Shown: one piece after another, positions 3,592 through 44,412 of the stretch | How positions within the stretch are numbered: the stretch's first letter is position 1 | Layout of the letters: every line of letters starts with the position of its first letter | From: Piromyces finnis finn | Lineage: Eukaryota > Fungi > Neocallimastigomycota | Length of the DNA: 64,000 nt | Direction: 5' to 3' | Assembly (NCBI GenBank): GCA_002104945.1 | Contig: MCFH01000013.1 | Location: 124,001-188,000, forward strand | Program-made: the position numbers and the translations under genes | Notes under the pieces: generated by a model | Told to the model about the DNA's origin: nothing | The model's database searches: none | The model's input: only the letters and a program-made list of their open reading frames with translations

Positions 3592-4421
3592 TGTAAAATA
3601 TTGTATTAGTTAAATGTATTAGTTAAATAATGTATTTAATACGTATGTAGAACAATGTATAATGTATTGAATTAATGTACCGTAAATTTTACAAAAATTT
3701 ACATCACAATACATTAACATAAATTTATGTAAATTTAATTTTATGATAAGATAAAGTTTTGATGATAAAATAAAATTTTAAAATTAAATAATTTTTAACC
3801 AATAAATATTTGAGATAAGAAAAAATTTTTTTTATAAACTAAGCCTCAAAATTAGAAATAAATAAATTAAATATATGTTTGAAATATAATCAACCATATA
3901 GTAAATAAATCAAAACTTTATTTTAAGTTTAGAAAATTCTTTAGTAAATAAATTGAATTTAAATAGTTTAATACAAATAATTTCTTTTAATAAATGTATA
4001 AATGTAAACAATGTAAAATTATAATATTAAAACATGTATATTAGAATTTATTCAATTTATTTAAAAAGTATAAATAAAGAAAATTTCTCAACTATTGAAA
4101 CGATAGTTGGAAAATAGTAATTAATCCAATTGTATCATTATTATTAATAATATTAGATTATTAATAAAGCTTATAATAAAACATTTTTTATTTAATTGAA
4201 AACTGATTACCTAGCGAAGGCTCTGGTTAAATAACCTTCGTGGTAAAGTAATCAGCAGTTGTCATAGTTTAGAAGATAAAGTTATTATTTAAATAAATAA
4301 AAAAGTATTAAAAAATAAATTGGAATTTTTTCTTTCTTTTGTTTTGTATTGTTGTTTTGTTAGCACAGACCTAAATCCAATAATTTAATTTAAAGGTTAG
4401 ATTTAAATTAAATATTTTACA
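3592..4421 (+). repeat. 5' LTR of element B
   Basis: Direct repeat of 9287-10116; same length; no difference seen in the stretches compared by eye; TG...CA ends. Confidence 0.97.
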
Positions 4422-4432
4422 ATTTTCCAACT
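4422..4432 (+). promoter_or_regulatory. Self-priming (Tf1/sushi-type) primer binding site of element B
   Basis: ATTTTCCAACT directly after the LTR is the exact reverse complement of AGTTGGAAAAT at 4105-4115 in the LTR, 36 nt downstream of the start of TATAAATA (4069-4076); no TGG tRNA-type PBS. Confidence 0.85.
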
Positions 4433-4481
4433 TTTTAGAATAGTGGATTTACCTTTGTGTGGGAAATAAATAAATAAATAA

Positions 4482-4518
<37 letters not shown>

Positions 4519-4568
4519 AAATAGTGAGAATTTAATATTAGAATTAAATTCGGGGATATATATATGTG

Positions 4569-4603
<35 letters not shown>

Positions 4604-4646
4604 TGAATAATAGTAGAATAAATATAATAGATAGAATAGTATTATT

Positions 4647-4683
<37 letters not shown>

Positions 4684-4736
4684 GATTTTAGAATAGAAAG
4701 GAATTTGTAGGATTTGGATAATCGAGGATTAAAATT

Positions 4737-7700
4737 TTGGAAATAAGGAATAATTTAGATTGTATTGTTTGGTGGATAATATATTTTAGTATGAACGGGG
4801 AATATAGGTATATCGACAACTGTAATGGTAATGGAGTAGCTGGAATCAGTGACGACGATTCTGAGGCTAGCTCCATGGAAATAGAACATGAGGATGGCGA
4901 AATCGTCAACGCCAGGGATAACCTCATACCAAGACCACCGAAGTTTTATGGAAAAAGGAATGAGTTAGCAAGTTTCTTTGCTAAACTCGAAAAATATTTC
5001 AAGTATAATCTAAGACAGAATGCTACCGAAGCTTACAAGATTGATGTACTTAGTTGCTATTTAGAAGGACCCGCCGCCGAATGGTATGCCGACTTGGAGA
5101 AAGAAGAAAGCCCTTTAATAAAATCTTATGAAGACCTTAAAGCCGCAATGCAAGCAAGGTACCGAACGTGCACGAGTTCTGATGTGGCTAATAGAAGATT
5201 AACGAAGCTCAACTACAAACAATTCAAAAGTGTGATGGATTACTGCGACTGTTTCGAAAAAACTTCTAGGGACTCGTCTTTTGACGATGAAGCCAAGATA
5301 CATTTCTTTGTAGAAGGATTGCCGCCGTCTGTTCAGGAGAAGACAAAACTAGTATATCCTAAGATAAGAAAGCTGTATGATCTAATCAATACTGTAGCTG
5401 CCAATATTGAAGAAGACTGGAGAATCTACGGAAAGGACCCAATGAATATAGATGGAGAAAGAGGAAGAAGATATAACCGGAATCTAGGAAAGCGACTCTA
5501 CCAAGGGAATTATGGGATGAAATTCAACAACTACCGAGACTTTCATCACGAGGAAAAAGTACAAAAGACCAAGAAATGCTTCATTTGTAAATCAACAGGA
5601 CATTTGAAGAAGGATTGCCCAATGCTCAAAGATAAATTGGCAAACCGCCCAAAAGCATTCATGATCAAGGAAAACAGAAAACAGCACTTATTGAATGTTT
5701 TCGATGTTGTACTTCATGTCAATCGAGGAATCTCACTAAATGCGTTAGTTGACTCAGGATCCGACTTGGAATTCATGGATTGGAAAACGGTCAATAAATA
5801 TAGAATACCAATCCAAAGGATGATGAAAGACAAGTTTGTGGAAGGACTGGGAGGAAATGGATTACTGAAGTATGAAACGATCCCGTTGATCATGTCTATC
5901 GGCAATCACAAGGAGTCTATTCAATTTTATATTACGACTCTACCTTCAGACGTATCACTTATTTTAGGAAACAAATGGCTAAGAAAACATGATCCGATTA
6001 TCAGTTTCAAGAATCAAAAATTAGAGTTTAAGTCTGAATTTTGTAAGACGAATTGTTGCGCTACTGATGAAGAAATAAATGAAAGAATTGAACAAAATAA
6101 ATTAAAAGAAGAGGAAGATAAAAGAAAGAGATTAGAGTTAGCTGAAGAAATTATTAATAATTATAAGAATAGTTTAGTTATTAGAGATAGTAAACTTAAA
6201 AATAAAGAAAATGTATTAGTAATAGAAAAGAAAAAGAAAAAGTCATGTATAAATAAAAAATGTAAAACATCAAAATTAAATAAAATTCTTCATCAAAAAT
6301 ACTTAGTATGTTGTGCGATTACAAGTGATAATGATGGTACACCTGAAGTCCCAAATGAATACAAAGAATTTAAAAATGTATTTGATGAAATTGAGTGTAA
6401 TGAGTTACCTCCTCATCGAATATATGACTGTAAGATTAAATTAAAGGATGATAATGAATTATTTTATGGACCATTATATCCTCTAACCGAGGAAGAGAGG
6501 GAAACGTTAAAGGAATATTTAAAAGAAAATCTAGAAAAAGGATTCATAAGACCCTCAACTTCACCTGCTGGAGCACCTGTACTGTTCGTTAGGAAAAAGG
6601 ATGGAACTTTAAGATTGTGTGTTGACTACCGAAGACTCAATGAAAACACAATTAGGGATTCATATCCGTTACCTCTTATATCCGAATTATTCGATAGGTT
6701 AAGAGAAGCTAAAATTTTTACTAAACTTGATCTCAAGTCTGCTTATAATCTAGTCCGAATAAATAAAGGCGATGAATATAAAACTGCATTTAGGACAAGA
6801 TTCGGTCACTTTGAATATCTTGTCATGCCGTTCGGATTAAAAAACGCTCCTGCAACCTTCCAACATTTTATCAATGATGTCCTCGGGGAATATTTGGATG
6901 AATTCGCGTTTTCTTATATTGATGATATTCTTATCTATTCAAAAGACTTAGAAGAACACCGAACTCACGTAAAGAAAGTCCTTAAAAAATTACAAGAAAA
7001 TGGGTTATATGTAAAATTAAGCAAATGCGAATTTGAAACGAATAAAACGTCATTTTTAGGTCACATAATTTCGGACAAGGGCATCTCCATGGATCCAAAG
7101 AAGGTAGAAGCAATTATGAATTGGCCAATTCCAAAGACTGTAAAGGAAGTTCAATCATTTTTGGGTTTATGCAATTACTATAGAAGATTCATTCCGAACT
7201 TTGCAGAAATAGCGAAACCTTTGCACAATCTAACAAAGAAAAATGTAGTTTTTGACTGGACTATAATTTGTAATAATGCTTTTGAGAAGTTAAAGCAGTG
7301 CTTCACTGAAGAACCAATTTTAGTACATGCCGATCCAGAATTACCTTATATAGTGGAAACTGATGCTAGTGATTTTGCAATTGGTGCAGTATTATCTCAA
7401 AGATTAAACAATAAGGAACTACATCCAATTTGTTATTTTTCAAGAGGACTTACTAAGTCAGAAAAGAACTATCCGATCTACGATAAAGAATTATTAGCGG
7501 TTATATGTGCACTTAAAGAATGGAGACATTATTTGGAAGGAGCTAAGCATCAATTCACTGTGTTTACAGATCACAAGAATCTTACCTTTCCAAGAAAGCC
7601 TGAATTATTATCTCAAAGACAAATTCGATGGAATTTGTTCTTAACTCGTTACGACTTCAAACTCCAATACAGACCAGGAAAAGAGGGAGGAAAACCGGAC

Positions 7701-9275
7701 TCATTTTCAAGAAGACCTGACTTTCAAAAAGAGGAAATTAAAGATGAAGAAACATTTTCTTGCTTAACTATAAAAGAAATTAAGGAAAACTTATGTTGTA
7801 TTGCAATCCAAGGAAATCTTAAAGAAGAATTAATCAAAGAAGTTAAAGAAGATACGGAAATACAAGAATTAACAAAAATTCTACAAGGGAATTCTATTGC
7901 AAGCAGAAAGTATAAAAAGCTTATGAAGAACTTTAAATTAAATGAAGAAGGTATTCTTTTGTATAAAGGATTAATTTTCGTACCAACTAAAATGAGAGAA
8001 AACATAATTTCAATTCATCATGATAATCCAGTTCATGGCCATTTTGGTATTATCAAAACCAAAGAATTAATAACAAGAAATTTCATTTGGTTAAACATGA
8101 CTCAAGATATAGTAAAGTATATAGCTTCTTGCAAGACTTGTGGTGCAGCTAAAGACAATCGCCATAAACCTTATGGATTATTGCAACCTTTACCTACTCC
8201 TAGTAGACCTTGGTCCTCGGTATCGATGGATTTCATAACTGATTTACCAAGATCTCATCAGAAAACGGTTATAATGGTTGTGGTTGACAGACTAACAAAA
8301 ATGGCTCACTTTATTCCATTCAGAATGATTCCAACTGCTCAAATTGCAGCAGATGTCTTCTTTAGAGAAATTTTCCGATTACATGGATTGCCAGACGAAA
8401 TTATATCTGATAGAGGAACGCAATTCACTTCTGAATTTTGGCAACGTTTATGTTGCCTATTAAATATCAAACATAATGTTTCAAGTGCTCACCATCCACA
8501 ATCTGATGGTCAAACTGAACGAGTTAATAGCATTCTAGAACAATTCTTAAGATGTTATATCAATAAAAGAAAAGATAACTGGATGAATCTCTTACCTTAT
8601 GCGGAATTTGCATACAATAATACACTACAACAATCGATTAACCAAACACCTTTCTTTGCTAACTATGGTCAAAATCCAAGATTTGATTTAGAAATTCCAG
8701 CTGATAGTGGTAATAGAAGTGCTAACCGTCACGCCTCTCAAATGCAAAACAACATTAAATTTTTAAAGAAAAATTTAGAAAAAGCTAAACAAAGATACAA
8801 GAAATATGCTGATTGTATAAGACTTATTGGTCCGAAATTGAGAATTGGTGATTTAGTTTGGTTAAAGCGTCCTGATTTACTTCCTAAAGGACCTCCTAAA
8901 TTAACTGATAAAAAACTTGGACCTTTTGAAATCATCGAAAAGACTGGACCAGTTTCTTATAAGTTAAGATTACCTGAGTCTTTTAGATGTCATCCTGTTT
9001 TCCATATCTCGAATTTAGAACCTTTTGTAGTGAGAGAAAATAGTGATAATTTGCAACATTCTATCAAGATACCTAATATCGCTACTGATTCATCTGTAGA
9101 AAGAATTCCATTGAAAATAGTTAGTGAAAAAATTGTCAATGGAATCAAGTATTATTTCATGGTTTGGAAAGATCATCTTCCTTCAGAAAGTTCTTGGCTT
9201 AGAGAAGATGAAATTGAGGACCCTCAAATGATTCAAGAATTTCTTAAACACAAGTCGCTCAGGGGCTCGACTTAA
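4737..9275 (+). CDS. Gag-Pol polyprotein of element B (capsid, CCHC, protease, RT, RNase H, integrase, chromodomain)
   Basis: CFICKSTGHLKKDC; ALVDSGS; YIDDILIYS; VETDASDF; HHDNPVHGH...CKTC, MDFITDLP, SDRGTQF, DGQTER; GPFEI; C-terminal YYFMVWKDHLPSESSWLRE chromodomain. True start may be ATG 4791 or 4875. Confidence 0.98.
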   Translation: MEIRNNLDCIVWWIIYFSMNGEYRYIDNCNGNGVAGISDDDSEASSMEIEHEDGEIVNARDNLIPRPPKFYGKRNELASFFAKLEKYFKYNLRQNATEAYKIDVLSCYLEGPAAEWYADLEKEESPLIKSYEDLKAAMQARYRTCTSSDVANRRLTKLNYKQFKSVMDYCDCFEKTSRDSSFDDEAKIHFFVEGLPPSVQEKTKLVYPKIRKLYDLINTVAANIEEDWRIYGKDPMNIDGERGRRYNRNLGKRLYQGNYGMKFNNYRDFHHEEKVQKTKKCFICKSTGHLKKDCPMLKDKLANRPKAFMIKENRKQHLLNVFDVVLHVNRGISLNALVDSGSDLEFMDWKTVNKYRIPIQRMMKDKFVEGLGGNGLLKYETIPLIMSIGNHKESIQFYITTLPSDVSLILGNKWLRKHDPIISFKNQKLEFKSEFCKTNCCATDEEINERIEQNKLKEEEDKRKRLELAEEIINNYKNSLVIRDSKLKNKENVLVIEKKKKKSCINKKCKTSKLNKILHQKYLVCCAITSDNDGTPEVPNEYKEFKNVFDEIECNELPPHRIYDCKIKLKDDNELFYGPLYPLTEEERETLKEYLKENLEKGFIRPSTSPAGAPVLFVRKKDGTLRLCVDYRRLNENTIRDSYPLPLISELFDRLREAKIFTKLDLKSAYNLVRINKGDEYKTAFRTRFGHFEYLVMPFGLKNAPATFQHFINDVLGEYLDEFAFSYIDDILIYSKDLEEHRTHVKKVLKKLQENGLYVKLSKCEFETNKTSFLGHIISDKGISMDPKKVEAIMNWPIPKTVKEVQSFLGLCNYYRRFIPNFAEIAKPLHNLTKKNVVFDWTIICNNAFEKLKQCFTEEPILVHADPELPYIVETDASDFAIGAVLSQRLNNKELHPICYFSRGLTKSEKNYPIYDKELLAVICALKEWRHYLEGAKHQFTVFTDHKNLTFPRKPELLSQRQIRWNLFLTRYDFKLQYRPGKEGGKPDSFSRRPDFQKEEIKDEETFSCLTIKEIKENLCCIAIQGNLKEELIKEVKEDTEIQELTKILQGNSIASRKYKKLMKNFKLNEEGILLYKGLIFVPTKMRENIISIHHDNPVHGHFGIIKTKELITRNFIWLNMTQDIVKYIASCKTCGAAKDNRHKPYGLLQPLPTPSRPWSSVSMDFITDLPRSHQKTVIMVVVDRLTKMAHFIPFRMIPTAQIAADVFFREIFRLHGLPDEIISDRGTQFTSEFWQRLCCLLNIKHNVSSAHHPQSDGQTERVNSILEQFLRCYINKRKDNWMNLLPYAEFAYNNTLQQSINQTPFFANYGQNPRFDLEIPADSGNRSANRHASQMQNNIKFLKKNLEKAKQRYKKYADCIRLIGPKLRIGDLVWLKRPDLLPKGPPKLTDKKLGPFEIIEKTGPVSYKLRLPESFRCHPVFHISNLEPFVVRENSDNLQHSIKIPNIATDSSVERIPLKIVSEKIVNGIKYYFMVWKDHLPSESSWLREDEIEDPQMIQEFLKHKSLRGST

Positions 9276-12762: not shown

Positions 12763-13110
12763 AAAATAAAATAAAATAAAATAAAATAAAATAAAATAAA
12801 ATAAAATAAAATAAAATAAAATAAAAATAAAATAAAATAAAATAAAATAAAATAAAATAAAAATAAAATAAAATAAAATAAAATAAAATAAAATAAAATA
12901 AAATAAAATAAAATAAAATAAAATAAAATAAAATAAAATAAAATAAAATAAAATAAAATAAAATAAAATAAAATAAAATAAAATAAAATAAAATAAAATA
13001 AAATAAAATAAAATAAAATAAAATAAAATAAAATAAAATAAAATAAAATAAAATAAAATAAAATAAAATAAAATAAAATAAAATAAAATAAAATAAAATA
13101 AAATAAAAAT
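12763..13110. repeat. (AAAAT)n microsatellite, about 350 bp
   Basis: Direct reading; explains the FYFIL-repeat ORFs 12718-13134 and 12753-13118. Confidence 0.98.
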
Positions 13111-13728
13111 ACTTGCAAGGGTAGGTATCCTCAAATTTCTTGTAAGAGAATATAAACTGATAAATAAATTTCGTCCATAGTTATTAAAATTTTTATTATA
13201 TAAGCTATTGACACTCCAAAAACTTTGATAAATTAGTGATTTAACTCTATAACTTTTATTTTTATTGGATCCAGATAATGGAGAAATAATATGAGACTCT
13301 ATTTAAATTATAGGAATGAATGACTATATATTTTTGAATTAATAAGAACACAATTGTTGGTGAGAAAGCTCTTAAAAAAGAAAATAGGGATTTTTGGACT
13401 TTTTTGTACATGTTAGATAGAATAAGTATCAGAGAAAGATCTTTGTCAAAGAGGATTTGAAATAATTATAACATAATATAATAAAATTTTTAAATTCTTT
13501 GATGTTCTTTTATAAAGCCTATGGGTTGAATTTTTCTTTTTGAAATTTTTCTAATAAAAGATTTTAATTTCTATATATCATTACCATGTTTCTTTTAATT
13601 TTTTTTTCTATAAAAGGTCTTTATGCCAAAAAATAAGAAGAAAATTTAAATTTCATAAAAATTTGATAATTGAAAAAAAAAATAGTATTAAATGTTATTA
13701 TTATCAAGAGCTTTAAATAATACTTAGG

Positions 13729-13760
<32 letters not shown>

Positions 13761-14153
13761 TTTTTATTATTTAAATTAATAATAAATAATTATATAATTT
13801 TTATGATGTTATATTTATTATATTTATTTTCTAATATATTCAATATTTAAGATTTTTTAAAAAAAATAAACAGTTTATATAGGATTTTTGTCAAAATAGA
13901 AAAACAAATTAAAATAAAATTATAAAATTAAAATGAAATTAAAATAAAATTTAAATATTGATAATAATTTTTTCTATTATTCTATAGATATTTTTTTCTT
14001 TCAAATTTACTATTATAAACAAACATGTGTTATGTATCTTATTGCTTATTGCTTGTTTTGTTGGTTTAGTGGATTTCATTTTGCTTCTTTTTTTTTTTAT
14101 TTTAATTTATTGGAAATATTAGGCTATGAATAGTTATGATTAATTATTTTTGT

Positions 14154-17100
14154 TTACCAACATTGACCAAATTCCGATTGACAGCCTTCTTCTTTACTAC
14201 AATAAACTTTAGTATTACCACACCATCCATATTTACTACAACAATATCCTTTTTGACATTTGCCAATGTCTTTACCACATTTACCAATGTTGGTGGTATT
14301 GCGTTGTTGATAGGTTTTACAAGAACCAAATTCAGATTGGCATCCTTGATTAATATCACAATAAGCACTAGTTTTACCACACCATCCATGTTTACTACAA
14401 CAATATCCTTTTTTACATTTGCCAATGTTTTTACCACACTTGTATGTTATTGAGGATGGTTGAATTGTAGAAGTAGAAGAATGCTTTTTACCTTCACATC
14501 TACCAAATTCAGATTGACAACCTAAACTAATTTTACAATGTTTATTAGAGAGTCCACACCATCCATACTTACTACAACATTCATTATTATCACAGGATCC
14601 ATACTTTTTACCACATCGACGGTTATCTTTATTGTTTTTTTCTTCTTTAGTAGTTTCATTTTTTGATTCATTCTTTGATTCAGTTGATTCAACAGTGCTT
14701 GATGATTCATACATAGCTTTACATTTTTCACCATTATTTCCATTCATTGTACTATTTATTTTTTTCAGTCATAAATTAATAAAAAAATAATTTTTATAAA
14801 AGTTAGTTTATTTTTTCTTTTTCAAATTTAATTTATATTTTTATATAAAATGAAGGTAATTTTACATCATCATTTTCATTTTTTTAATTCCTTCAGGAAG
14901 AGAAGTAATACAATTATTATCTATATATCTTTTTTTTTTAAAAAAAGAAAAATAAATTAAAATTAGAATTAAAATTAATTTCTAATATACAAATGTTTTA
15001 TATTTATAGTAGATGCTTACAAATATTCAAGATTAATAGAATTTTTAATTGAATCAGGAATTGTTGTTAAGTAATTATCATTCATTATTCTTTATTAAAA
15101 ATATATTTATGGTATTATAGATTATTAAAAAATAAATTTAATTAGTTTTTTTTAAAAGTAAAAGTATAATGAGAAAAAAGAATACATACAATTCAAAAAG
15201 ATTTGTTATTTTGTCAATAGAATCAGGAATTTTTTTTATAGAATTTTTACTAAAATCTCTATTAAATTATTATTTATTGATAATAATAATAATAATACGA
15301 AAAAAAGAATTGATTATTAATAAAAACAGTTTGATTTCTCATTTACAAAAAATTATATTTCAATTGAAAAAAAAAGATCCATACATTGTATTAAGATGAG
15401 TGAGGTTTTCAAGTATAACAGGAAATTCTGTAAAGTTATTTCTACTTAAATCTCTATTAATAAAATAGTTTAATAAAAAAATAAATATAAATTAATAGGA
15501 TTAAATTTCATAATATTATTATTATATATATTAGGGAAACCTACAATAATCCATTAAGAGTATTAGTATTAATTGTATCAGGAATGTCAGTTAATCTATT
15601 TCCACTTAAGTTTCTATTAAATATAATATTTAATAACATATATTATAATTAATAAAAAGTAACTTTTATATAAATTATTAATCGTATTAAAATATATACA
15701 AATATTGAACATTATTAAGATTTCCAATAGCGTCAGGAATGGTAACCAATTTATTATCCTTTAAATTTCTATTCAATATATATAAAAAAGGCTTAATAAT
15801 TTTTTTTCTAAAATACATTTTATATTTTTATAATGGAAAAAAAATTAAAATTATAAATGACATACAAATGAAAAAGACTGAAAATATTTCCAATGGTATC
15901 AGGAAGTGTAGTTAATTTATTTTCAAATAAAGAACTATTTATAAGTTATTTAAAGCAATTTATTTAATAAATAGTATTTATGGCTTATAGATGATGATAA
16001 TAGGTATCGAAAAAAAAGTATAAATTACAAAACTCCAAGCTTTGAAAGATTTCCAATCGAATCAGGAAGTGTAGTTAGATTATTTCCATTTAACTCTCTA
16101 TTAAATGTTTTTTGTTTTTAATATACATATTTATATCATTAATAAAAATTACAATATACTATAGTTTTATGATCTAATAAAAAATGAATAGAATACAATT
16201 GAAAAAGATTTGAAAGATTTCCAATAGTATCAGGTAATTTGCTTATTGTATTATTATTTGCAGATCTAGTAATAATCCATTATTTAAAGAAATATTTTAG
16301 TTTTTATTTTTGGATTTAAATATATATATTATATTAAATAAATGTTAAACGTACAATAACCAAAGATTACTAAGATTTCCAATTGAATTAGGAAGGGTAG
16401 TTAATTTATTATTGCTTAAATTGCTATATAATAGTTTAACAATTTTATATTAAAAATTTATTAATAAAACTATTTAATTATTTAGTTAACTAAATAAAAT
16501 TTTTTTATAAAAAATATATACAATTTAAAAAGCCTAGTAAGATTTCCAATGGATCCAGGAAGTTCAGTTAAATTATTTTTTTCTAAAGTTCTATTCAATT
16601 ATACATTATATGATATTAGTAAACTCTATTGATGAATAATACAATAGATAGATAAACTAGATTTTTTTAAATTTTTTTTTTAAAAAAGTATTTTTATGAT
16701 ATAAAAATACATACAATTTATAAAGTTTAGATAGACTTCCAATAGTATCAGGAAGAGTAGTTAAATTATTGTTATCCAAAGTTCTATTCATTTTTAAATA
16801 TAACTTTAGTCTTTTTTTTCATACTTTTAAAAAAATGTTATTTTTTGATTAAATATATCTACAAAACATACAACCATTCAAGATTAACGAGGTTTTCAAA
16901 TGTATCAGGAAGGGTAGTTAATTCATTTCCATTTAAATTCCTATTTGAAATATTCAAATTTTTAATCCATCATTTATCAATAATTCAATATATTACTTTT
17001 TTCTTTTTACAAAAAAATAATATTACATACAATGATGAAAGATGAAAAAGATTTCCAATTGAATCAGGAATTACTGTTAAATGATTATCATTTAAATGTC

Positions 17101-19236
17101 TTTAAAATTATAAACAAATCATTTCAATTATTTGCATTTTAATTAAAGTGACAAAAAAAAGTATATTATTTTTTTAATTATTAGGGTAAGAGGATTAAAA
17201 AGAAAAAAATGTTTACAAGTATTGAAGATTAGTAAGATTGCTAAAAATTGTATCGGAAAGTGTTGTTAAATTATTATTTCCTACATTTCTATATAATTTA
17301 TTATTATTAAATATAATGGTTAATAAAGTAATATTAAATCATTTATATTATTATACTATAAATGGCGAAGGAAATAAAGCATACATACAATTCAATAATA
17401 TTATTAAGACTTTCAATGACTTTTGGAAACTCTGTTAATTTATTTTCACTAATATTTCTATTAATAACAAGTATTTTATATGAATACAGAGTTAATATTT
17501 AATTTTTATTTTAATATTCAAATTAAAAAAAAAAAATAATAAAAATACTTACAAAATGCATAGATTTTTAAGTTTTTTAAAGGAATCCGGAAAGGTGTTT
17601 ACATTATTATTAACCATATATCTATTAAAATTAAAATAATAAATTAAAAAAGTTATTATTAATATCTACTTTTTTTATGATATATATAAAAATATAATAA
17701 TATAAAGAAAAGATTTCATACAAAGAATAAAGGTTTGTAAGATTTGAAATTGAATCAGGAAGTGTTGTTAATTTATTATTTGCTATACACCTGATATACA
17801 TATATTCATAGAAATGTTTATTTAATTTAATGGATCTGATTTATTATATTTTCCAAATATTTTATATTAAAGCAATAAAAAAAAACAATACAATTCTTTA
17901 AGATTACTAAGACTCGAGATTGAATTAGGAAGAGTAGTAATGTTGTTATCATCTAAATTTCTATATAAATTTAATAATATATTTTAAAAGTTTTCTTTAA
18001 TACTATGACTTTATAATATTTTTAAAAAAAAGGAAAAAGAAAATTATACAATTGAGAAAGATTAGAAAGTTTTCCAATGGTTTCAGGGAGTGTTGTTAAT
18101 TTGTTATAGTTTAAATACCTATTAAAATTAGAATGTTATTAATAAATTTATAGATTTTATTTGGTATAAAAAAAGAATAATAATATAAAGGAAAAAGGAA
18201 AAAAATCATTACAAAACATAAAGCTTTTTAAGATTTGAAATTGAATCAGGTAGATTTGTTAATTCATTATATTCCAAGTATCTATTAAATATTTTCATAG
18301 TAATTAGTATTTTAGTTTGATTAATTTTTTTCAATATTATTTTTTAAAAATAATATATAAAACAAACTGGCATTAAATTAGTACAATTCTTCAAGATTAC
18401 TAAGTTTCGAGATTGATTCCGGAAGTGCAGTAAAATTATTATTATTTAAATGTCTAGGAAAAATTTAATTTTATATTTTAATATATATATAATTTTATTT
18501 TATTTATTTTTTTTTTTTAATTTTTTTTATTAAAATATTTTATTTAAAAAAAAAAAAAAAAAAAAAAAATACATACAGATTCTTAAGATTCTTAAGATTT
18601 CCTATAGTATTAGGAAGTGTTGTTAATTTGTTATTATATAAATATCTATTAAATATTTAGATAAAAAAGATATATATAATTATTAAATCAAATTTAATAA
18701 AGCATTTTTATTTTTTTTTAAATTATACATTATAGAATTACAAATTAGTAAGATTGGTAAGATTGCCAATTGAATCCGGAATCTCAATTAAATCATTACT
18801 ATTTATATATCTATATATATATATTTCATTATATAATTTGAAAAATGATATAAAATATTTTATTATTTAGAGTAATATATATAACAATAATAATAATAGT
18901 CTATGCCTTTTTTATTAAAAAAATGTTATATATAGGTGATACTCACAATTTTTCCAAACTAGTTATTTTAAAAATAGCATCTAAAACATTTTTTGTTTTA
19001 ATATCATGAGTTTCTCTAAGAAATATATTAAATATTTTCAAGTTTTTAGTAATTGCTGCATTGCTTTATTTCATTTATTATTAAATATACTTATCCATGA
19101 CTTACATAACAGATATTTTATTATTTTTATTCATAATACATATTTTGAAATGAGTTATCTTTCTAAGTTCATCACACGTATATCCATATATTAATGTGAT
19201 GAATAACACCACATTTAAAATAATTTTTAGTATCAT
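14154..19236 (-). CDS. 27-exon secreted LRR protein with three C-terminal CBM18 (hevein-like) domains, about 816 aa
   Basis: Exons: 19236-19106 (MILKIILNVVLFITLIYG signal), 19015-18947, 18810-18742, 18645-18577, 18453-18385, 18281-18213, 18118-18050, 17960-17892, 17790-17722, 17621-17553, 17457-17389, 17288-17217, 17099-17031, 16940-16872, 16783-16715, 16590-16522, 16423-16355, 16265-16197, 16097-16029, 15934-15866, 15768-15700, 15613-15545, 15453-15385, 15258-15190, 15089-15021, 14928-14866, 14751-14154. All introns GT-AG, phase 2; no stops; consensus LxLxxNxLTxLPDSIGNLxxL; last exon has 3x CGxxxGxCxxxxCCSKYGWCG. Confidence 0.92.
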
Positions 19237-20570
19237 TTTTTTCTATTAAATTCTCAAAAAAAGAAAGAATTTTAAGCAATGTCTTTTTGTATTTTTTGTT
19301 CGTATTATCACTCTTTTGAGTTTTTAAACTTTATAATAATTAAAAAAAAGTTTTTATTTTAAATTTTATTGCTTTTTTATTGTAACTTTTATAAAAATAG
19401 AAAAAGTGTTAAAATGCCCTAACTCGAAGAAGCTAAAATAAAAAAAGCATTTCCTTTTTTTTTTTTTATGAATTTCTTAAGAATTTAAAAAAAGAAATTT
19501 TTTAATTAAAAATTAAATAAACAATTAAAAATAATATATGCAAAGTAAAACATAATATTATATGATTAATATATTATTATTATATTATCATTCGAATGAA
19601 TTGATAGTTCGATTTCTTTTTTCATTTTAAACATTCCATAAAAGTTTTAATTAAATTTATATTTAATAAATGCTATTGTACTGTATTGTAATATATGTGA
19701 AATAAATCAAATAACGAAATTCTAAATATATTAATATATATTATTAATTGAATTATTAAATATTGGCATTTGATAAAAAAAAAAAAACGAACTAAATTGA
19801 ATAGTTTGCATAGTTTTCACTTTTTTTTTTTTGCTTTATTTAAAATGCGCTTTTTTATTTGTTATTAATATTGAATTTCTTTTACAAAAGTATCAATTTT
19901 TATTGTTATGAATGTAAAAAAAAAAGTATTAAGTTATAAGTATGCATATATATAATTTCAATTTTTAAAAGAAAATTTTTGATTTTATCATAAAGAAATT
20001 CTTAAAATTTTAAATTAAATAAATTAATTAAATATATTCTAATGTATTATATTCATATATTATAATTTATTTTATATTATTTATATCAATAATTGGATCA
20101 TCCATTTTTTACTTTTTATATTTAAAAATTGATATAAAATAATTTGAAAAAGCTTGCTAGTGAACTATGAAATTAATTAGTACTAAAGCCATATTATTTT
20201 TTTTGGTATTATTGAATATTCGAAGAAATGCTAGTATAACTTTATACTTTATTTTGTTTGTATTATTCTTTTTTCAAATTATGATATTTTTTAAAAATTG
20301 AGTATCAATCACAATCTAAATCAATGAATAAATATTATAAAAAAAGATTTCTGTCATTTTTCAGGAGAAATTCATAAACTTAAAAAAAGAAATTTTTTAA
20401 TATTTATATATATGTAATAAATATATTGAATGTATTCTAAATATATTAAATTAAATAGTTTTTTAAATTATAATTAATAAATAAATGAATGTAAATTATG
20501 TATTAATGATAATATTAAATTAATCCTCTATTTAAATATATTATATTGTAATAAATATGAATAGATAATA

Positions 20571-22367: not shown

Positions 22368-25300
22368 CTAATTTTTAATAAAGGTACTTTCAGCTGGACT
22401 ACCATAAACAGTAGCTAATTTTCCCTTGTAAAGTGTCATTCTAATTAAAGCAATGTTTGGATCACATTGGTAATAACGAATGGTGTGAATACCTTCATCA
22501 AGAGTAATATTTTGTTTGTAACTTCTTCTACCGTTATTTTCAATATCAGCAGCCCAAGTACCTTGTTTCCAAGTACCGGCTAAGTAGTCTTTAACAAGAG
22601 TATTAATAATATCGATTTCACCATTGTCAATGCTAATACCGTATCTTAATTGTTCCTTACCATAAATAAGATTACTAGTTGGGTTGAATTGACTTTCTAA
22701 ATTGTATTCACCCTTAGCTGGAATGTATACCTTGTATTCAACGTATGGAGCATTCTTTAAGTCATCAACTGTTTCATAGGTAATAGTAGAACTACTGGTT
22801 CTTACAGTGCTTAAATATTTACCATTATCTGGAATAACAATCATTTCATTCTTAACGAGCTTTCCTTGGTTATTGATACCCTTACCGTCAACCTTCTTAC
22901 TGAAGTTGGCAACATCAAGAGTAACATAATCATGAGTCATTACATAGGTCTTTGGTTCTAATTTAGCATTATCGATGACCTTGGCTTCAACCTTAACATG
23001 AACTTCTTGTTCACCAGAAGTAATAACAATCATACCTTCAGAATCCTTATTTATTTTTTTCCAGTTAATACTAACTTCAATAACCTTTTCTTCAGCAACC
23101 TTACCACTTTTAGTAGAGAGTTTGATCCACTTATCAGCAGTAGCCTTGAATTTGTAGGCACTACCCTTGGTAAGAAGTTGAATCTTGAAGGTTTCATCAC
23201 TAACACTGTTGAAGGTTGGTAACTTTGTTTCACCTTCGGTAACGACATTCTTGAAACTGTCGGTAATGTCTTCAACTAAAATTTGCATTTCAGAAGATGA
23301 TTCTGGATTAACGGTCATTAAGTCTGGAAGCTTACCACTGTCACGATCCCAAGCTTGAAGACCAATGTGGTAGTTTTGACCACAAGAAATCATACCACTC
23401 CACTTTTTACCTGATTCAACAACACCTGGCATCTTTTCATTATAACCATCGAATAATTCATTATCAAGATCAATGGCTTCTTGGCATAATTTAGCATACT
23501 TGTTAGCAACGGTAAGACCAAGTTTAGCGTACTTGTTGTTTAAAGCAGCGTAGATTTGAATCTTTAAAACATTTGGAACAGCCATAGCTGGATAGTAGAC
23601 AAGTTGATAGAAAGAAGCCTTGACATCATCAGGAACCTTTGCCCATAAAGCTTCAGTACGTTTCATAATATCATCACATTCTTCAAGAATGATAAGAGCT
23701 TCGTTGTAATTGTCGATACTGTACATATCGGAACAAGTGTCAACAGTGTTGTATAAAACATGTTCGACAACACGCTTGGTTTCAAGATCAAGGTATCTAT
23801 CAATAAGGTTAGCAGCTTCTTTACATTCTTCATCGCTTAAGCCACTACCATCTTTTCTACTAAATTGTTGTTTAGCCCATTCGAATTTGTATTCGTCAAT
23901 TCTCTTGTGACCTGCAGTACCAAGGTATTCATAGTCATAAGCAAGATCAAGGAAGTAGGAGATGTTAATTTCCATTGGTTTTAAATCACCAACATTAGCA
24001 ATCCAGACACCTTCAATTCCATAGTCGTAAGCAATAGACATTTGATCCCAAATAGTAGAGATTTGTGTGTTTTGAACCCAGGTGTAAGATTTTGGAGCAC
24101 CAACATAGTCAAAGTGATAATACATACCAGAACCAGCAATTTGCTTTTGTTGATCAAGAGTTGGTAAAGTTCTCATGTAAGCCCAGTTATCATCACAGAA
24201 CATAGCATAAGTTTGCTTCATACAATCTTTATTGTATAATTCACCAGCATACCAAGCGTCTTCAACTTCCTTATAGATGACTAATTGAGTTGGATTGGTA
24301 TCCTTATGATCCTTTAAAATTCCCTTTTGAGTATTGATAATGTAGTTAAGTAAGTCAGCGTATCTTGGTGGATCGTCAGCAGCTGGAAGAGTGGAATCGT
24401 TTTCACCTCTCATACCGACAGTACAAATGTTTTCGAATTCTTTGTTTCTGATAACACTTTCAGTCCAGAATTCTTCGATTTCCTTGTTAACTTCTGGATG
24501 GTAGCCTTCTTGACCTGGAATGTTGTAAAGATTCCAAGCTTCAGCAGAAGTGTAGTTTAAGTCGTTTCTGTAGTAGTTAGCCCATTCACTACCGGCACGG
24601 TAAAGTGGTTCATGGTGAGAAGTTCCCATAACAATACCGTACTTATCAGCAAGCTTAGCACTGGCAAGACTATCACCTACACCATCAGCACTGAAAGTGT
24701 CACCCCACATGGCTGGCCAAAGGTAGTTTGCCTTTAAACGAATTAAAAGTTCATAAACTTGACGGTAGAAGTATTGATTTCTTCCACCGTATCTTTTGTC
24801 TGTCCAAGTGGTAAGAGATGGTGCTTCATCATTAAGGAAAATACCACGATATCTAATAGATGGTTCCTTTGAAATGATATTACATTCTCTGCCTGGAAGG
24901 GTAACGCTAGATTGAACAGCAGGTAAAACATCACTCCACCAAACCCATGGAGATACTCCCATCATTTCAGAGATATGCATCATACCGTAAAGGGCACCAC
25001 GTTTGTCACTACCGACTATAACAAGAGCTTCGTCAACTCCAGTCATTGGTGATTTAACTACTTGCATTTGATAGCATTCCCAACGACCTTCAAGTCTCTT
25101 TAAGTCAATCTTTTTGGTATTGACAAGTTGGTTGATTACATCATTACCCTTTTCACCTGCAGTACCAACAATAATAACTCTGCCAGATAATTTTTTAGCA
25201 TCAGTTTCAATTTTTAAACCATTCTTACTTTCAACAGCATTACCTTCCTTATCGATTTTATCGCCAATAACTCTGGCAACATCAGATCTAAGAGCTTGAG

Positions 25301-25721
25301 CAATAACACTAATACCATCATATTCAGAATCGTTTTCGTCAATGTAAAGACTGGCCATCACCTTGGAATTCTCAATTAAAACAAAATCCTTTGAAGGTAA
25401 ATAGATTTTTGGAGCAATTTTTTGATTTCTAATTGGCATGTGTGGTACATCATCTTGTTCATTGTTTTCTTGATCATCGTTTTCTTTTTCAGAGTTTTCT
25501 TCGTCAGAAACAATTTCCTCAACATCGATAGCTGCAGAAACATCTTCAACATCATCATCACTAGATTCTTCAACACTAGAAGTAGCTATTTCAATAGAAT
25601 TATCCTTTTCATGAACATTTTCAGAAATTGAAAGATCATTTGGAATATTTTTAGCGGATGAGGAAGAATATTGGCATTCGAAAATAAGAGCCAATAAAGC
25701 TAAAGTGTTAATAAATTTCAT
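22368..25721 (-). CDS. Secreted GH115 xylan alpha-1,2-glucuronidase, copy 1 (intronless)
   Basis: Signal peptide, acidic linker, GSDKRGALYG, GVSPWVWW, RYRGIFLNDEAP, KANYLWPAMW, GTSHHEP, GMRG, YYHFDYVGAP, NVGDLKPME motifs. Confidence 0.92.
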   Translation of the reverse strand: MKFINTLALLALIFECQYSSSSAKNIPNDLSISENVHEKDNSIEIATSSVEESSDDDVEDVSAAIDVEEIVSDEENSEKENDDQENNEQDDVPHMPIRNQKIAPKIYLPSKDFVLIENSKVMASLYIDENDSEYDGISVIAQALRSDVARVIGDKIDKEGNAVESKNGLKIETDAKKLSGRVIIVGTAGEKGNDVINQLVNTKKIDLKRLEGRWECYQMQVVKSPMTGVDEALVIVGSDKRGALYGMMHISEMMGVSPWVWWSDVLPAVQSSVTLPGRECNIISKEPSIRYRGIFLNDEAPSLTTWTDKRYGGRNQYFYRQVYELLIRLKANYLWPAMWGDTFSADGVGDSLASAKLADKYGIVMGTSHHEPLYRAGSEWANYYRNDLNYTSAEAWNLYNIPGQEGYHPEVNKEIEEFWTESVIRNKEFENICTVGMRGENDSTLPAADDPPRYADLLNYIINTQKGILKDHKDTNPTQLVIYKEVEDAWYAGELYNKDCMKQTYAMFCDDNWAYMRTLPTLDQQKQIAGSGMYYHFDYVGAPKSYTWVQNTQISTIWDQMSIAYDYGIEGVWIANVGDLKPMEINISYFLDLAYDYEYLGTAGHKRIDEYKFEWAKQQFSRKDGSGLSDEECKEAANLIDRYLDLETKRVVEHVLYNTVDTCSDMYSIDNYNEALIILEECDDIMKRTEALWAKVPDDVKASFYQLVYYPAMAVPNVLKIQIYAALNNKYAKLGLTVANKYAKLCQEAIDLDNELFDGYNEKMPGVVESGKKWSGMISCGQNYHIGLQAWDRDSGKLPDLMTVNPESSSEMQILVEDITDSFKNVVTEGETKLPTFNSVSDETFKIQLLTKGSAYKFKATADKWIKLSTKSGKVAEEKVIEVSINWKKINKDSEGMIVITSGEQEVHVKVEAKVIDNAKLEPKTYVMTHDYVTLDVANFSKKVDGKGINNQGKLVKNEMIVIPDNGKYLSTVRTSSSTITYETVDDLKNAPYVEYKVYIPAKGEYNLESQFNPTSNLIYGKEQLRYGISIDNGEIDIINTLVKDYLAGTWKQGTWAADIENNGRRSYKQNITLDEGIHTIRYYQCDPNIALIRMTLYKGKLATVYGSPAESTFIKN

Positions 25722-26826
25722 TTTTATTTATATATTTTTAAATAAATAAATAAAAAAAAAAACTATAATAAAATAAATAAATTAAATATTAAGATTAACT
25801 AATATGTTTATGTTTATATTTAAATAATATTTAACAAATTAATAATATTTTATATTTATTAATTTGCTTTTTTTTTTTAATTTCTATAATTTCTTATTAT
25901 TTTATTATTTATATATATAAATATTTATTTATTTATATATATTTTTTAAATTTTGATATTCTAATAAGGAAAAAAGAAAATTTCTTGTTTATATATCTTT
26001 TTTTTATTATTATTATTATTATTTGAAAATATCCGCATTTTATTAATTTTATATATTATAATATTGTATTATTGTTTTATTAAATAATATATTTTTTATT
26101 GTTGTACAAAAATAGTTTAAAAATTTATATTAAAAGTATATTCTTTATCAATATACCATCACTTATAAAGCATCAAGATTATACAACTTTATATTATATT
26201 TTTTTAATATGAAATAATTTTTTTTTTTACAAAGAATTTAATATTGTATATTAAATTAATTTAGCTATTTTAAAATACCAATTAAATAACAATAAAATAA
26301 AAAATAATTCGTAAACTAAAAACAATAAGAATTTCTATTTCATAAAATATTATAAAAACTTTTATAATTTAAATATGTTAATATGTTACATAAATCTTAC
26401 AATGTATAAATAATCGTTTTTATTCTACTAAAATTTAATTATAAATTAAAGTTTTTATTTCTAATAAGACACTTTTACTTTTTTATATAGGAATTTTATA
26501 TAATTATTATTAATATTGTAGATGGATATTTTTAATTTTCCTTCTTATTTATTGTTCTTTGATAAATTTGTATAATATAATAGTTAAAAAACAAAACTTT
26601 CTAAATTTCTTTTTCTTTAATATTATATACTGTAATAATAAATTAAGAAAAAAACTCAATGTTTTTCTAAAAAATATATATATATAAAGTTAAACAAATA
26701 ATAAAAATTATTTATTCCTATTTTTTAAATATAGTAAACTAATAATATCTTTGAACATTTATTTATTAAAGTTACAGGACCATTTCTTTTCAAAAAAAAA
26801 AAAAAAAAAAAAAGGTTATTTAACGG

Positions 26827-26872
26827 AATAAAAAATTTCCCTTAATTTTCTATTGGAAAATCCAATTTATTA
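26827..26872. promoter_or_regulatory. Conserved noncoding element in the GH115/SGNH divergent promoter
   Basis: TTTCTATTGGAAAATCCAATTTATTA; reverse-complement paralogue at 44024-44067 amid diverged DNA; core ATTGG-N5-CCAAT inverted repeat. Confidence 0.5.
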
Positions 26873-27711
26873 ATATTTCAACAATTAAAATATTGTTTAA
26901 GCAAACAATGATCAATGATTTATCTCAATTTGACTATCAACAAACCATTATTAAATTGATGGAGACAACAACAATAATAAAATAATGACAAATAAAAATT
27001 CAGTATTGTAATGATATTGATACCCTTAAAAAAAAAATTATATATGTTATATCTATATTTAATAAAAATTAAAAAATTATAATAAATAATTTTCCCTTAT
27101 GGTAATAGTATTAATACAAATTTAAATAACAATATTTAATTCTTTTTTAAAAAACCTTTAAAGTGTTATCACTTATTATACTTTTTTTTTTATTTATTAC
27201 TTAATATAATAAGTAGTAATTTTTTTTTTTTTTTAAATAATAATAATAATAATAAAATATTTAATGAAAATAATTATATTTTAAATTATATATAAAATAA
27301 TCCTAATATGTACCAAAAATTAATCAAATTTGTGAAACATTTAAGGATTTTTATATATTTATTTTAATTTAATATATTATTCCATAGTAAATATTAGTCA
27401 TGTAAATGAAAAGGGAGGATAATAAATTTATGAAAAACGAATAATAATAACAATAATAATAAGCATCTTATTTTTATTATTAAAAAATTAACATATTATA
27501 CTTATAGAATATATAAAATATTATTGATTAAAAATATTAGAAATACTCACTTAAAATATTATATTATTAAATATATCAACATTTTTGTATATAAATAGTA
27601 TTATTTCCATTATATTTTTATTTTTTTTATTATTACTATTAAAAATTAAAAATATTAAATTTCTTATTACTAAAAAAGTAAGGAAGAAATATTTTATAGT
27701 AAATTAAAAAA

Positions 27712-29004
27712 ATGAAATTTTATTTAATATCAGCTTTATGTCTTATATTTATTAATGCTATTTTTGCATTAAATGAAGTATCATACACTGGTACTTGGTC
27801 TGCTTCTCAATACTGTAATGGAGAAATGCCAGAAATTGATTTACAAGGAAATACTTTACGTCAATTTCTTAGAGTTTCTATTCCTGGTGAAAATTTAAGA
27901 TTCCATTTTTCCAATATTTACGGTAATGAAGAATTAGTATTACAATCTATTCATGTTGCAAAATCTGCTGGTCAAGGTACTGGTAAAATTATTTTAGAAA
28001 CTGATACTGAAATCACTTTTAATGGTAGTCCAGAAGTTACTATTCCAGCTAATGGTGATATCATTTCTGATACCATTCCATTTTCAATCTCCACTTTTGA
28101 TGAAATTGCCATTTCTATCTACTATGGTAAGATTCCAGCTGATTTCACTGGTCATGCTGGTGCTAGAACTTACTCTTTCATTGAATTAGGCAATGCTGTT
28201 AGTAAAGAAAGCTTTAGTGAAGAACACAAGTTTGCTCGTTGGTACACAATGGCAGCTATTGATGTTGTTGATAATGAAAAGGAAAAAGAAGCTATTTTAT
28301 GTTACGGTGATTCTATTACTGATGGTAGAGGTTCTACTACCGATCATCAAAATAGATGGACTGATGTCTTTGCTGAAAAATTACAAAGTAATCCAGCTAC
28401 TCAACACTTTTCAGTATTAAATGCTGGTATCGGTGGTAGTAGTTTATACGGTCCAAACAATCCTGTTTGGCCAACTGGTTTAGGTAGATTCCAAAAGGAT
28501 GTTGCCGAACAAGTTAATGTCAAGTACATGATTGTTTTATATGGTATTAATGATATTATTTATGGTAATATTGATGCTCCAACTCTTATTCAAGGTTTCA
28601 AGGAACTCATCCAAAAAGCCCATGACCTTGGTATTACTATCTATGGTAGTCCAATTCTTCCATTTAAAACCCAATCTTTATGGACTGAAGAAAAGAATAT
28701 AATAAAGGAAACCGTTAATGATTGGATTGTCAACACCCCAGCTAGTGAAGGTGGTTTTGATGCTATTATTGATTTCGCCTCTGTTGTTGCTGATCCATAT
28801 GATCCAATGGTCTTCAATGCTGATTTATGTGATAATGATGGTCTTCATCCAAACTACTTAGGTCACAATGCTATTGGTAATGCTGTTGATCTTAGTCTTT
28901 TCATTTCTGAAGAAGAAGATATTAGTAGTGAAGAAGAAGTTGATGACATTATTATTGATAATGAAGAAGTTGCTGAAATTGACAGTGCTGATGAAGAAAA
29001 TTAA
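27712..29004 (+). CDS. Secreted SGNH/GDSL esterase (XynE-like; putative carbohydrate esterase), copy 1
   Basis: Signal peptide; TLRQFLRVS...FSN N-domain; GDSITDG, NAGIGG, GIND, DGLHPN blocks; acidic tail; intronless. Confidence 0.9.
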   Translation: MKFYLISALCLIFINAIFALNEVSYTGTWSASQYCNGEMPEIDLQGNTLRQFLRVSIPGENLRFHFSNIYGNEELVLQSIHVAKSAGQGTGKIILETDTEITFNGSPEVTIPANGDIISDTIPFSISTFDEIAISIYYGKIPADFTGHAGARTYSFIELGNAVSKESFSEEHKFARWYTMAAIDVVDNEKEKEAILCYGDSITDGRGSTTDHQNRWTDVFAEKLQSNPATQHFSVLNAGIGGSSLYGPNNPVWPTGLGRFQKDVAEQVNVKYMIVLYGINDIIYGNIDAPTLIQGFKELIQKAHDLGITIYGSPILPFKTQSLWTEEKNIIKETVNDWIVNTPASEGGFDAIIDFASVVADPYDPMVFNADLCDNDGLHPNYLGHNAIGNAVDLSLFISEEEDISSEEEVDDIIIDNEEVAEIDSADEEN

Positions 29005-42970: not shown

Positions 42971-44023
42971 TTTTAATTTAAAATATTTCTTCCTTACTTT
43001 TTTAGTAATAAGAAATTAAATATTTTTAATAGTAATAAAAAAAAAAATAAAAATATAATGGAAATAGTACTGTTTATATACAAAAAATGTTGATCTATAT
43101 TTAATAATAAAAAAAATATTAATCAACAAAAGCTTAATTATAATATTTAATTTATTAATATATTATGTAATTTATAATTTATTAATAATATATTAATAAT
43201 TAATTGAAAATATATTATATTTTTTTATTTCCTTGGGTAACATTTAAAGTATGAATCATTTAAAGTTTTATCTTTCTAATAGTAAAATTTCCATATTTCC
43301 ATTTTTGAATTTGTGAATGAGTATTTTTATTTATTTAAATTCTCAAAGTCATATTTATAAACAATATAATAAATATATTATGATTTTAAATAATAATAAA
43401 CATAAAAAAAGTTCATTCACTTTTATGCCTATTTATTTTTATTATTGTTTATTTTTTTATTATTCTTTTATATTTATATGTACTAGTAAAAATATATTGT
43501 TCCATTTTTTTAAAAAAAGGAATATGAAAATTTTATTTATAATATTATAATTATGACTAATAAATTATAATGGAACAATGTCATATTAAATTTAAAAAAG
43601 GAAAAATTAAAAAAAAAAAACCTTAAAATTAAGTATTTCCAATGCTATAAATTTGGTACATATGGGATTATATGGAAATTACTTTTTTTATTATAAAATC
43701 TTTATGAAATCCAATAGAGATGTAAAAAAGATAATATATATAGTGCAATCTATTAAAAATTATTATTGTTATAATATGTTGTAATAAGCATTTTGTATTA
43801 TAATTATTTATAAAAATAGAGTTGTAATAATTTAAATACTCGTTTTTTTATTCTTTATTATTTCATAAATACTTTTACTATTTATAATATTCATAAGAAC
43901 TAACATACAACAAATTGTCATGTTTAATAAAATAAAGAGGAAATTATTATAAAAATTTATTTAATTGGACGTTTTTTAATATTTAATATTTAATTTTTAA
44001 TTATTTTAAAAATTTTATATAAA

Positions 44024-44067
44024 TAATAAATTGGATTTCCCAATAGAAATCGAGGAATTTTTTTATT
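44024..44067. promoter_or_regulatory. Paralogue of the conserved noncoding element at 26827-26872
   Basis: Reverse complement reads TTTCTATTGGGAAATCCAATTTATTA. Confidence 0.5.
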
Positions 44068-44195
44068 TAATAATTATTATTTAATAAGGAAAATGTCTCA
44101 TAACTCTAATAAATATGATTTTTTTCATTCATAATTGAGTAAAAATGAATATTCTTATGGTTTTTATAATACTCAAATAAAAATTTATTTGAGGG

Positions 44196-44412
44196 TATTA
44201 AGAGTTGTTTAATTTAGGTTTATAATTATGTCAACTTTATTAATATATTTTATGATAAAGAACTACTTGCGTTACATTCTTCTCAAACTACATGTATTTA
44301 TACATTTACATTGTGGCTTAAACATATAATTAAATACAATATATACAAATACGTTTTAATACATTTCAATACATTTGAATACATGTGACATAACGTTTCA
44401 CATATTCTAACA
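44196..44412 (-). repeat. 3' LTR of the copia-type element
   Basis: Preceded on the minus strand by the PPT; reads identical to 48868-49084. Confidence 0.93.

Follow-up and report, generated by a model that had tools for sequence, protein, structure and literature searches.

In plant receptor genes such as ERECTA, a long extracellular leucine-rich repeat (LRR) domain is encoded by one exon of 72 nucleotides (nt) for each LRR, the repeats being of the plant-specific 24-residue kind. Small LRR exons of fixed length are also found in brown algae, in the LRR-ROCO genes and in genes with ‘type I/II LRR exons’, where the exons measure 72 nt (Zambounis et al. 2012, PMC3341825; Teng et al. 2024, PMC11378527). 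The ‘type II’ exon is the type for which shuffling has not been observed (PMC3341825). The criteria for shuffling that are used below come from Ectocarpus: LRR exons that survive as relics or lie antisense, recent duplicates with recombined exons, and positive selection (PMC3341825). Alternative splicing has been added to them (PMC11378527). The LRR arrays of Tetrahymena consist of 90-nt exons for 30-residue repeats; these exons number tens of thousands, are spread over more than 1000 genes in each species and have expanded very recently (2019, PMC6564038). The glycoprotein-hormone receptors LHR, FSHR and TSHR are a further case: according to passages of PMC11378527 that cite Koo et al. 1991 and Kobe and Deisenhofer 1994, they have one LRR per exon and introns that are all in phase 2, an arrangement classically taken to reflect growth through the duplication of exons; the same passages describe their LRR exons as constitutively spliced in the main isoform. 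Here we describe a gene of comparable layout from the gut fungus Piromyces finnis (Neocallimastigomycota), referred to as the LRR-CBM18 gene. It lies on the minus strand at 14154-19236 of a 64,000-nt stretch (the window), which is C35:124001-188000 (contig MCFH01000013.1) of an assembly of 56.46 Mb in 232 contigs. A full-text search of the literature found no paper on fixed-length phase-2 LRR exon arrays in Neocallimastigomycota.

The original prediction for this locus, made from the letters of the window, had been that 25 symmetric LRR exons form a combinatorial diversification system, working by skipping, shuffling or change of copy number. We think it likely, rather, that this is an intact, ordinary and constitutively spliced gene for a secreted solenoid of 24 LRRs on a CBM18 chitin tether, with a layout that is the inherited trace of tandem exon duplication. 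What the gene represents is a known architecture in a new lineage, the 69-nt exon being kept across at least three genera of Neocallimastigomycota, and the window gene gives no evidence for a new mechanism of generating diversity.

Structure of the gene and its product

Exons were located by a scripted scan for AG-exon-GT units over the minus strand, followed by an explicit gene model. In this model 27 exons join to 2451 nt, or 816 codons, with a sole stop at the end; because the DNA has a G+C content of only ~20%, an open frame of that length across 27 exons is not a product of chance. All 52 splice sites are canonical. The 26 introns are of 86-136 nt, are without exception GT-AG and in phase 2, and each of them would bring in a stop if it were retained. 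Between 19015 and 14866 lie 25 internal exons, of which 23 are of 69 nt, one is of 72 nt (17288-17217) and one of 63 nt (14928-14866), and the phase-2 cut always splits the codon for the fourth-position Leu of LxxLxLxxN; in these respects the gene model matches the prediction exactly. The number of LRR exons is 24 and not the 25 first proposed, exon 2 (19015-18947) being unrecognized by the exon profile and resembling a cap. On the donor side the exons end in TT (22 cases), AT (three) or CT (one), and their first bases are A (20), G (three), T (two) and C (one). The residues at the actual junctions are 21 Leu, three Ile and two Phe, and when every donor is paired with every acceptor the 676 combinations yield only L, I, F or M, without a single stop, as had been anticipated from the exon ends.

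The product begins with a signal-peptide-like segment and the part encoded by the cap exon; then come 24 LRRs, which belong to the SHOC2/Leptospira type with 23 residues, then a linker and finally the three CBM18 modules. To judge from its sequence, exon 1 probably encodes a signal peptide, and the product would then be secreted. The motif LxxLxLxxNxLxxLPxxIxxLxxL recurs with a period of 23 residues, and the consensus across the 24 exons is LxLxxNxLTTLPDSIGNLxNLxx, in which N is invariant and P is present in at least 90%. The scaffold positions are conserved, with entropies of 0-1 bit, and the x positions vary, with 2.5-3.5 bits; the contrast between a constant backbone and variable residues upon it is thus real. 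Among sequences of the PDB, the exon profile matches the Leptospira proteins LIC11098 (E 6e-44) and LIC10831 (4e-39) and also SHOC2 (5e-21). Pfam models applied to single exons gave matches to LRR_4 in eight of the 24 and to LRR_8 in six, with a best E of 3e-4 (LRR_8), a piece of 22 residues being too short for the cut-off of models with 44-61 positions.

The terminal exon matches PF00187 in three stretches, with 87.8 bits against a cut-off of 27.8, and the Cys-rich core CCS..GWCG is visible. In gut fungi, CBM18 tails are joined to a diverse set of secreted domains (CotH, serpin, deacetylase, subtilisin, GH18), and the tail looks like a general anchor to chitin or to the wall; in the present case the modules probably hold the product on chitin, that of the fungus's own wall. 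ROC GTPase and COR domains are absent, the non-LRR coding exons of the gene being the signal, cap and CBM18 exons only. Most likely the gene gives rise to a single protein, in which a long LRR solenoid is held on chitin.

Origin and age of the repeats

The prototype unit of the array would have been a 69-nt exon together with an intron that interrupts, behind the second base, the codon for the fourth-position Leu of LxxLxLxxN. Unequal recombination would have multiplied this exon-intron unit in tandem, each copy inheriting an equal length and the same phase-2 boundaries; unequal crossing-over is the presumed means of copying. The duplications in the window gene are old, and the family alters its number of repeats only slowly. 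On this scheme the symmetry of the exons and their stop-free junctions follow from tandem descent together with conservation of the Leu/Ile/Phe codon; they are no device for recombining exons, and no selective explanation of them, or of the fixed exon length, is needed.

The nucleotide identity between exons of the window gene averages 63%, and the most similar pairs are exons 5 and 8 (80%), 6 and 9 (78%) and 15 and 16 (77%). Identity is not significantly higher between adjacent exons (0.641) than between non-adjacent ones (0.630; permutation p = 0.12), and pairwise identity between the introns is 0.64, against 0.61 in a shuffled control. Low identity between exons, the lack of an adjacency effect and introns near the shuffled level together argue that there has been no recent duplication inside the gene. 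The tandem duplication that had been proposed for the neighbours at 16783-16715 and 16590-16522 (exons 15 and 16) is accepted in part: the array did grow by copying of exon plus intron, but this pair ranks only third in identity. A higher-order periodicity was considered on account of pairs 5/8 and 6/9 and was rejected, since exons 7 and 10 are only 57% identical; the pattern fits at most an old copying of a two-exon block. For 15 of 22 window exons the nearest relative is within the same gene, and identity is 63% within the gene and 55% to other genes, both of which point to intragenic growth of the array.

The profile of the exons was also searched against the whole assembly, where 875 candidates came up at first look, many lying in intronless open reading frames (ORFs). 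Of 15 stretches that were fetched, 13 carry arrays of at least three such exons, with a length of 69 nt in almost every case; one locus accounts for three of these stretches, as near-identical copies. The 69-nt phase-2 layout, with equal intron position, is present at at least 12 other loci of the genome, many of them with a CBM18 terminal exon. At one locus (L020, C157:603000-611000) the exon after the array of 69-nt LRR exons encodes two CBM10 (fungal dockerin) modules, a hint that the product is an LRR protein docked to the cellulosome. The genome also contains clustered intronless LRR ORFs of 700-1150 residues with a similar repeat motif (L001, L005, C57, C163, C195, C189), and the coexistence of the two forms implies that the exon-per-repeat layout is a property of one lineage among the LRR genes of the genome, not of all of them. 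The intronless ORFs could have arisen by retrocopying of a spliced mRNA, by bacterial transfer or by loss of introns.

Paralogues of the window gene give an indication of how such arrays change. A younger gene of 23 exons with LRR and CBM18 parts, in the stretch C177:32500-42499 (L013), contains internal tandem blocks of two exons that are 79% identical over 466 nt, introns included, from which it follows that copying took in the exon together with its intron. Two contigs of ~21-22 kb, C75 (L011) and C93 (L012), are 99.4-99.8% identical and colinear to this stretch, the C75 copy being 99.8% identical to it; in the C93 copy, several exons are disrupted by a total of 47 gap positions. The possibility that the three copies differ in exon content was rejected, as the alignment is colinear and the exons ‘missing’ from C93 are small indels. 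By their sequence, the C75 and C93 copies are likely to be redundant contigs or haplotigs and not real paralogues. On C191 there are two genes (L024 and the second gene in L014) with a DNA identity of 86%, and their LRR exons pair by position in seven of seven cases, at 94%. An older third paralogue on the same contig has both gene ends in common with them and 11 LRR exons in place of seven. Among these recent duplicates (the window gene itself is without a close one) no rearranged exon content was found, all being colinear. Repeat number drifts, slowly and on an evolutionary time scale, and this is the sole change visible.

The layout is not confined to Piromyces. A protein of Anaeromyces robustus (P0002, 930 amino acids) is encoded by 17 exons, of which 11 measure 69 nt, its 16 introns being all in phase 2, and a protein of Neocallimastix californiae/lanati (P0178, 1424 amino acids) by 37 exons, with all 36 introns in phase 2 and internal exons that include 12 of 69 and ten of 72 nt. 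In both, the cut falls in the same Leu codon as in the window gene. An intron position and phase common to Piromyces, Anaeromyces and Neocallimastix must be older than the split of these genera. The exons of the window gene map non-colinearly onto its best LRR-CBM18 matches, which are accordingly not orthologues.

The gene model of P0002 (L026, MCFG01000147.1) spans two near-identical tandem blocks, at ~1501-2830 and 4007-5470, each of six LRR exons and a Cys-rich exon, and could be a fusion of two genes in tandem. In Piromyces sp. E2, P. finnis and Neocallimastix the annotation of many CBM18 proteins reads ‘partial’, which is consistent with predictors missing arrays of tiny LRR exons upstream. 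Such genes are in general easily mis-annotated, as these ‘partial’ entries suggest and as is seen when a single-base indel leads a predictor silently to omit an exon.

Exon skipping

Several points weigh against reading the locus as an ordinary constitutively spliced gene. No close orthologue was found: when the terminal exon was compared with 1.84 billion representatives, with a word-indexed collection and in a metagenome scan, the best match of the tail was 52-57% identical. Skipping of any 69-nt exon would keep both the frame and the repeat register, so that skipped isoforms would be structurally viable, and brown-algal genes of comparable layout have been reported to be alternatively spliced (PMC11378527). 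The assembled transcript contigs discussed below show the dominant isoform only and come from relatives of the window gene, and the test of selection, also given below, comprises 28 differences in one pair of paralogues other than the window gene.

Regulated skipping of cassette exons, by which one gene would yield LRR-CBM18 isoforms with different subsets of repeats and hence a wider binding repertoire, is the alternative that survives best, and even so we regard it as unlikely. The precedent for it is Ectocarpus, in which the alternative splicing of comparable LRR arrays has been reported (PMC11378527). Within the window gene, what speaks for it is that all the exons are symmetric and freely joinable, that 69 nt make exactly one repeat, and that the donor hexamers are heterogeneous. 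The symmetry is, however, fully accounted for by descent, being common to the whole family and to three genera, and the introns, which are at the identity of their shuffled control, hold no conserved elements: self-BLAST detected no conserved intron block, and there are no docking or selector sequences of the Dscam type. The transcripts of relatives are equally unfavourable to it. A contig of 4442 nt from a JGI sample (L037) has an ORF without interruption, the product of which matches P0178 at 99.9% identity along its full 1424 residues, and holds all 37 exons of the Neocallimastix gene, joined in genomic order. In ten LRR-CBM18 clusters at 90% identity, drawn from independently assembled transcript-like contigs of gut fungi, there is no 23-residue deletion, and independent full-length members are free of gaps apart from N-terminal truncations and a difference of one CBM18 unit. 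The dominant transcripts of relatives and the lack of intronic control elements thus argue against skipping as a major process, although skipping at a low level or under particular conditions may occur at this locus. The window gene is probably spliced constitutively.

One annotated case had the appearance of skipping. The N. lanati protein P0259 differs from P0178 by a gap of 23 residues, the sole such difference among near-identical proteins of the family. It was rejected, because the exon concerned has, at the P0259 locus, a 1-nt insertion of A in a homopolymer (L034:8375-8535 compared with L035:5740-5880, in tandem paralogues that are 98.9% identical over 14.7 kb) and the gene model drops the exon after the extra A. 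The insertion is an effect of sequencing or annotation, or a private frameshift, and is not evidence about splicing. The more general proposal that gut fungi display variable binding surfaces through frame-neutral skipping of 69-nt exons in wall-anchored LRR-CBM18 genes seems to us unlikely as well; were it true, gut fungi would possess an equivalent of the LRR arrays with alternative splicing that have been proposed for brown algae.

Exon shuffling and decay

That exons are still being moved, inverted, inactivated and exchanged among LRR loci, by germline shuffling or gene conversion, so as to give fast-evolving receptors, is in our view very improbable. The idea has in its favour that the layout equals that of the brown-algal genes and that the genome holds a multigene family with variable numbers of repeats. 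In addition, the closest exon to seven of 22 window exons is in another gene, though at ~72-78% identity; as the best such match is only 78%, there has been no recent exchange. The traces that shuffling leaves in Ectocarpus are missing. A six-frame hmmsearch of 13500-20000 at maximum sensitivity gave 24 matches, all of them the minus-strand exons, and a six-frame profile search of eight paralogue loci gave LRR hits on the coding strand only, with none antisense or intronic; the introns, at 86-136 nt, are in any case too short to hide exons. The exon order and number that were expected to differ between paralogues are both retained in the recent ones, at 99.8% and at 86% identity. Selection at the variable positions of the concave face had also been suggested, and the ratio of nonsynonymous to synonymous substitution (dN/dS, NG86) in one paralogue pair of 154 codons is 0.38 overall, 0.45 at the concave-face x positions and 0.16 in the scaffold, that is, below 1 throughout, as under purifying to relaxed selection; the power of the test is low. 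What remains of the proposed combinatorial diversification is that the number of repeats does differ between related paralogues (seven and 11), shuffling being without relics, reordered duplicates or a dN/dS above 1.

It is just as improbable that the gene is a decaying or unexpressed relic in which the regular structure no longer matters: the exact product of the terminal exon is indeed missing from a collection of 15 billion proteins, and the window's own product surfaced neither in a region search with the Anaeromyces protein P0002 nor in the word-indexed protein search, but all the splice sites and the frame across 27 exons are intact at ~20% G+C, the scaffold residues are kept in 24 of 24 repeats, and the Cys pattern of all three CBM18 modules is far above the Pfam cut-off.

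Individual exons

All exons are on the minus strand and are numbered in the direction of transcription. Exon 1 (19106-19236, 131 nt) contains the ATG and a hydrophobic, signal-peptide-like N-terminus, and ends in AT before GTAAGT, in phase 2. Exon 2 (18947-19015, 69 nt, phase 2 at both ends), which is non-LRR by the exon profile, is a probable N-terminal cap with an LxxL tail at its end. LRRs 1 to 9 are each encoded by 69 nt: exon 3 (18742-18810), exon 4 (18577-18645), the sole exon with a CT end, exon 5 (18385-18453) and exon 6 (18213-18281), the partners of exons 8 and 9 in the two most similar pairs, exon 7 (18050-18118), exon 8 (17892-17960), exon 9 (17722-17790), exon 10 (17553-17621) and exon 11 (17389-17457). 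LRR 10, in exon 12 (17217-17288), has 72 nt and thus one additional residue, and its conserved P is replaced by S. There follow, again with 69 nt each, LRRs 11 to 19 in exon 13 (17031-17099), exon 14 (16872-16940), exon 15 (16715-16783) and its partner exon 16 (16522-16590), exon 17 (16355-16423), exon 18 (16197-16265), exon 19 (16029-16097), exon 20 (15866-15934) and exon 21 (15700-15768). Exon 22 (15545-15613, 69 nt) encodes LRR 20, the second half of which is degenerate, and exon 23 (15385-15453, 69 nt), for LRR 21, has an AT end. LRRs 22 and 23 are in exon 24 (15190-15258) and exon 25 (15021-15089), both of 69 nt, and LRR 24, a shortened last repeat, is in exon 26 (14866-14928), which has 63 nt and an AT end. 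Exon 27 (14154-14751, 598 nt) encodes a low-complexity linker rich in Ser, Thr, Glu and Asn, the three CBM18 (Chitin_bind_1) modules (PF00187, E 5.4e-25) and the stop.

Five of the LRR exons, those starting at 17457, 16423, 15613, 15453 and 15258, contain a further AG, in frame and 9 nt from the exon start. This inner AG comes from TTA-AGx or TTT-AGx codons, and its use would remove three residues of the beta-strand; the sites are probably a by-product of codon usage.

Neighbouring genes

The G+C content along the window ranges from 14 to 40%, and the neighbours of the LRR-CBM18 gene include GH115, SGNH esterase and phage-type lysozyme genes and a Ty3-type retroelement. A pair made up of a GH115 glucuronidase and an SGNH esterase occurs twice, in inverted orientation, at 22368-29004 and 41678-53634, with 1116 of 1117 residues identical in the glucuronidase and 430 of 430 in the esterase. 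In the second copy the intergenic spacer is ~5 kb longer, and contains a long terminal repeat element with an ORF for a phage-type lysozyme (46934-48139). On the plus strand, at 4737-9275, an uninterrupted ORF of 1512 residues encodes a polyprotein of the Ty3/gypsy type with gag, zinc knuckle, reverse transcriptase, RNase H, integrase and chromodomain, and at 35956-37914 (also on the plus strand) an ORF of 652 residues has the 7tm_3 domain of class-C G-protein-coupled receptors (E 1e-11). A pentanucleotide microsatellite of the (TATTT)n type, ~340 nt long, lies at 12770-13110, ~1 kb downstream of the LRR-CBM18 gene.

Comparison with known systems

The comparison with the LRR-ROCO genes of Ectocarpus that accompanied the original prediction is an apt one (PMC3341825). 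The window gene and the brown-algal genes share one LRR per small exon of fixed length, introns in phase 2, tandem arrays and membership of a multigene family, and the boundaries of the window exons, which start with xLxxNxL and end with LxxL, resemble those of the algal ‘type II’ exon. They differ in that the window exons have 69 and not 72 nt and in that the host is a fungus and not a stramenopile; the window protein has no ROC-COR or kinase domain, and is a predicted secreted protein with a CBM18 end. The window family is also without the relic or antisense exons, the recombined recent duplicates and the signal of positive selection. The Tetrahymena arrays resemble the present one in their single exon length, an extreme bias to phase 2, a ‘junction’ residue that neighbouring exons have in common, and clonal descent through repeated duplication (PMC6564038), whereas here the exons have 69 nt, the genes number some dozens and the repeats of the window gene are old. 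The glycoprotein-hormone receptors, with the layout given above, differ in being animal G-protein-coupled receptors with ~9 repeats, and their kinship in sequence to the window gene is limited to the LRR motif. The plant genes of the ERECTA type differ in the repeat itself, which in the window gene is the 23-residue repeat of the SHOC2/Leptospira type.

Further close counterparts are the LRR-CBM18 proteins of Neocallimastigomycota, annotated as ‘L domain-like’ or ‘RNI-like’, of which P0002 and P0178 are examples. They have the same order of an LRR array followed by CBM18, exons of 69 or 72 nt in phase 2 and the same intron position; they are not orthologues of the window gene, their tails being 52-57% identical to its own and their repeats numbering from ~6 to ~50. 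The layout is in this way tied to a large uncharacterized family of secreted LRR proteins with chitin-binding or dockerin anchors, and the LRR-CBM18 family is a candidate for a role in cell-surface recognition within the rumen community. The architecture in which each LRR has its own exon of fixed length and every intron is in phase 2, described earlier from brown algae, ciliates, animals and reportedly plants, is hereby extended to an early-diverging lineage of fungi.

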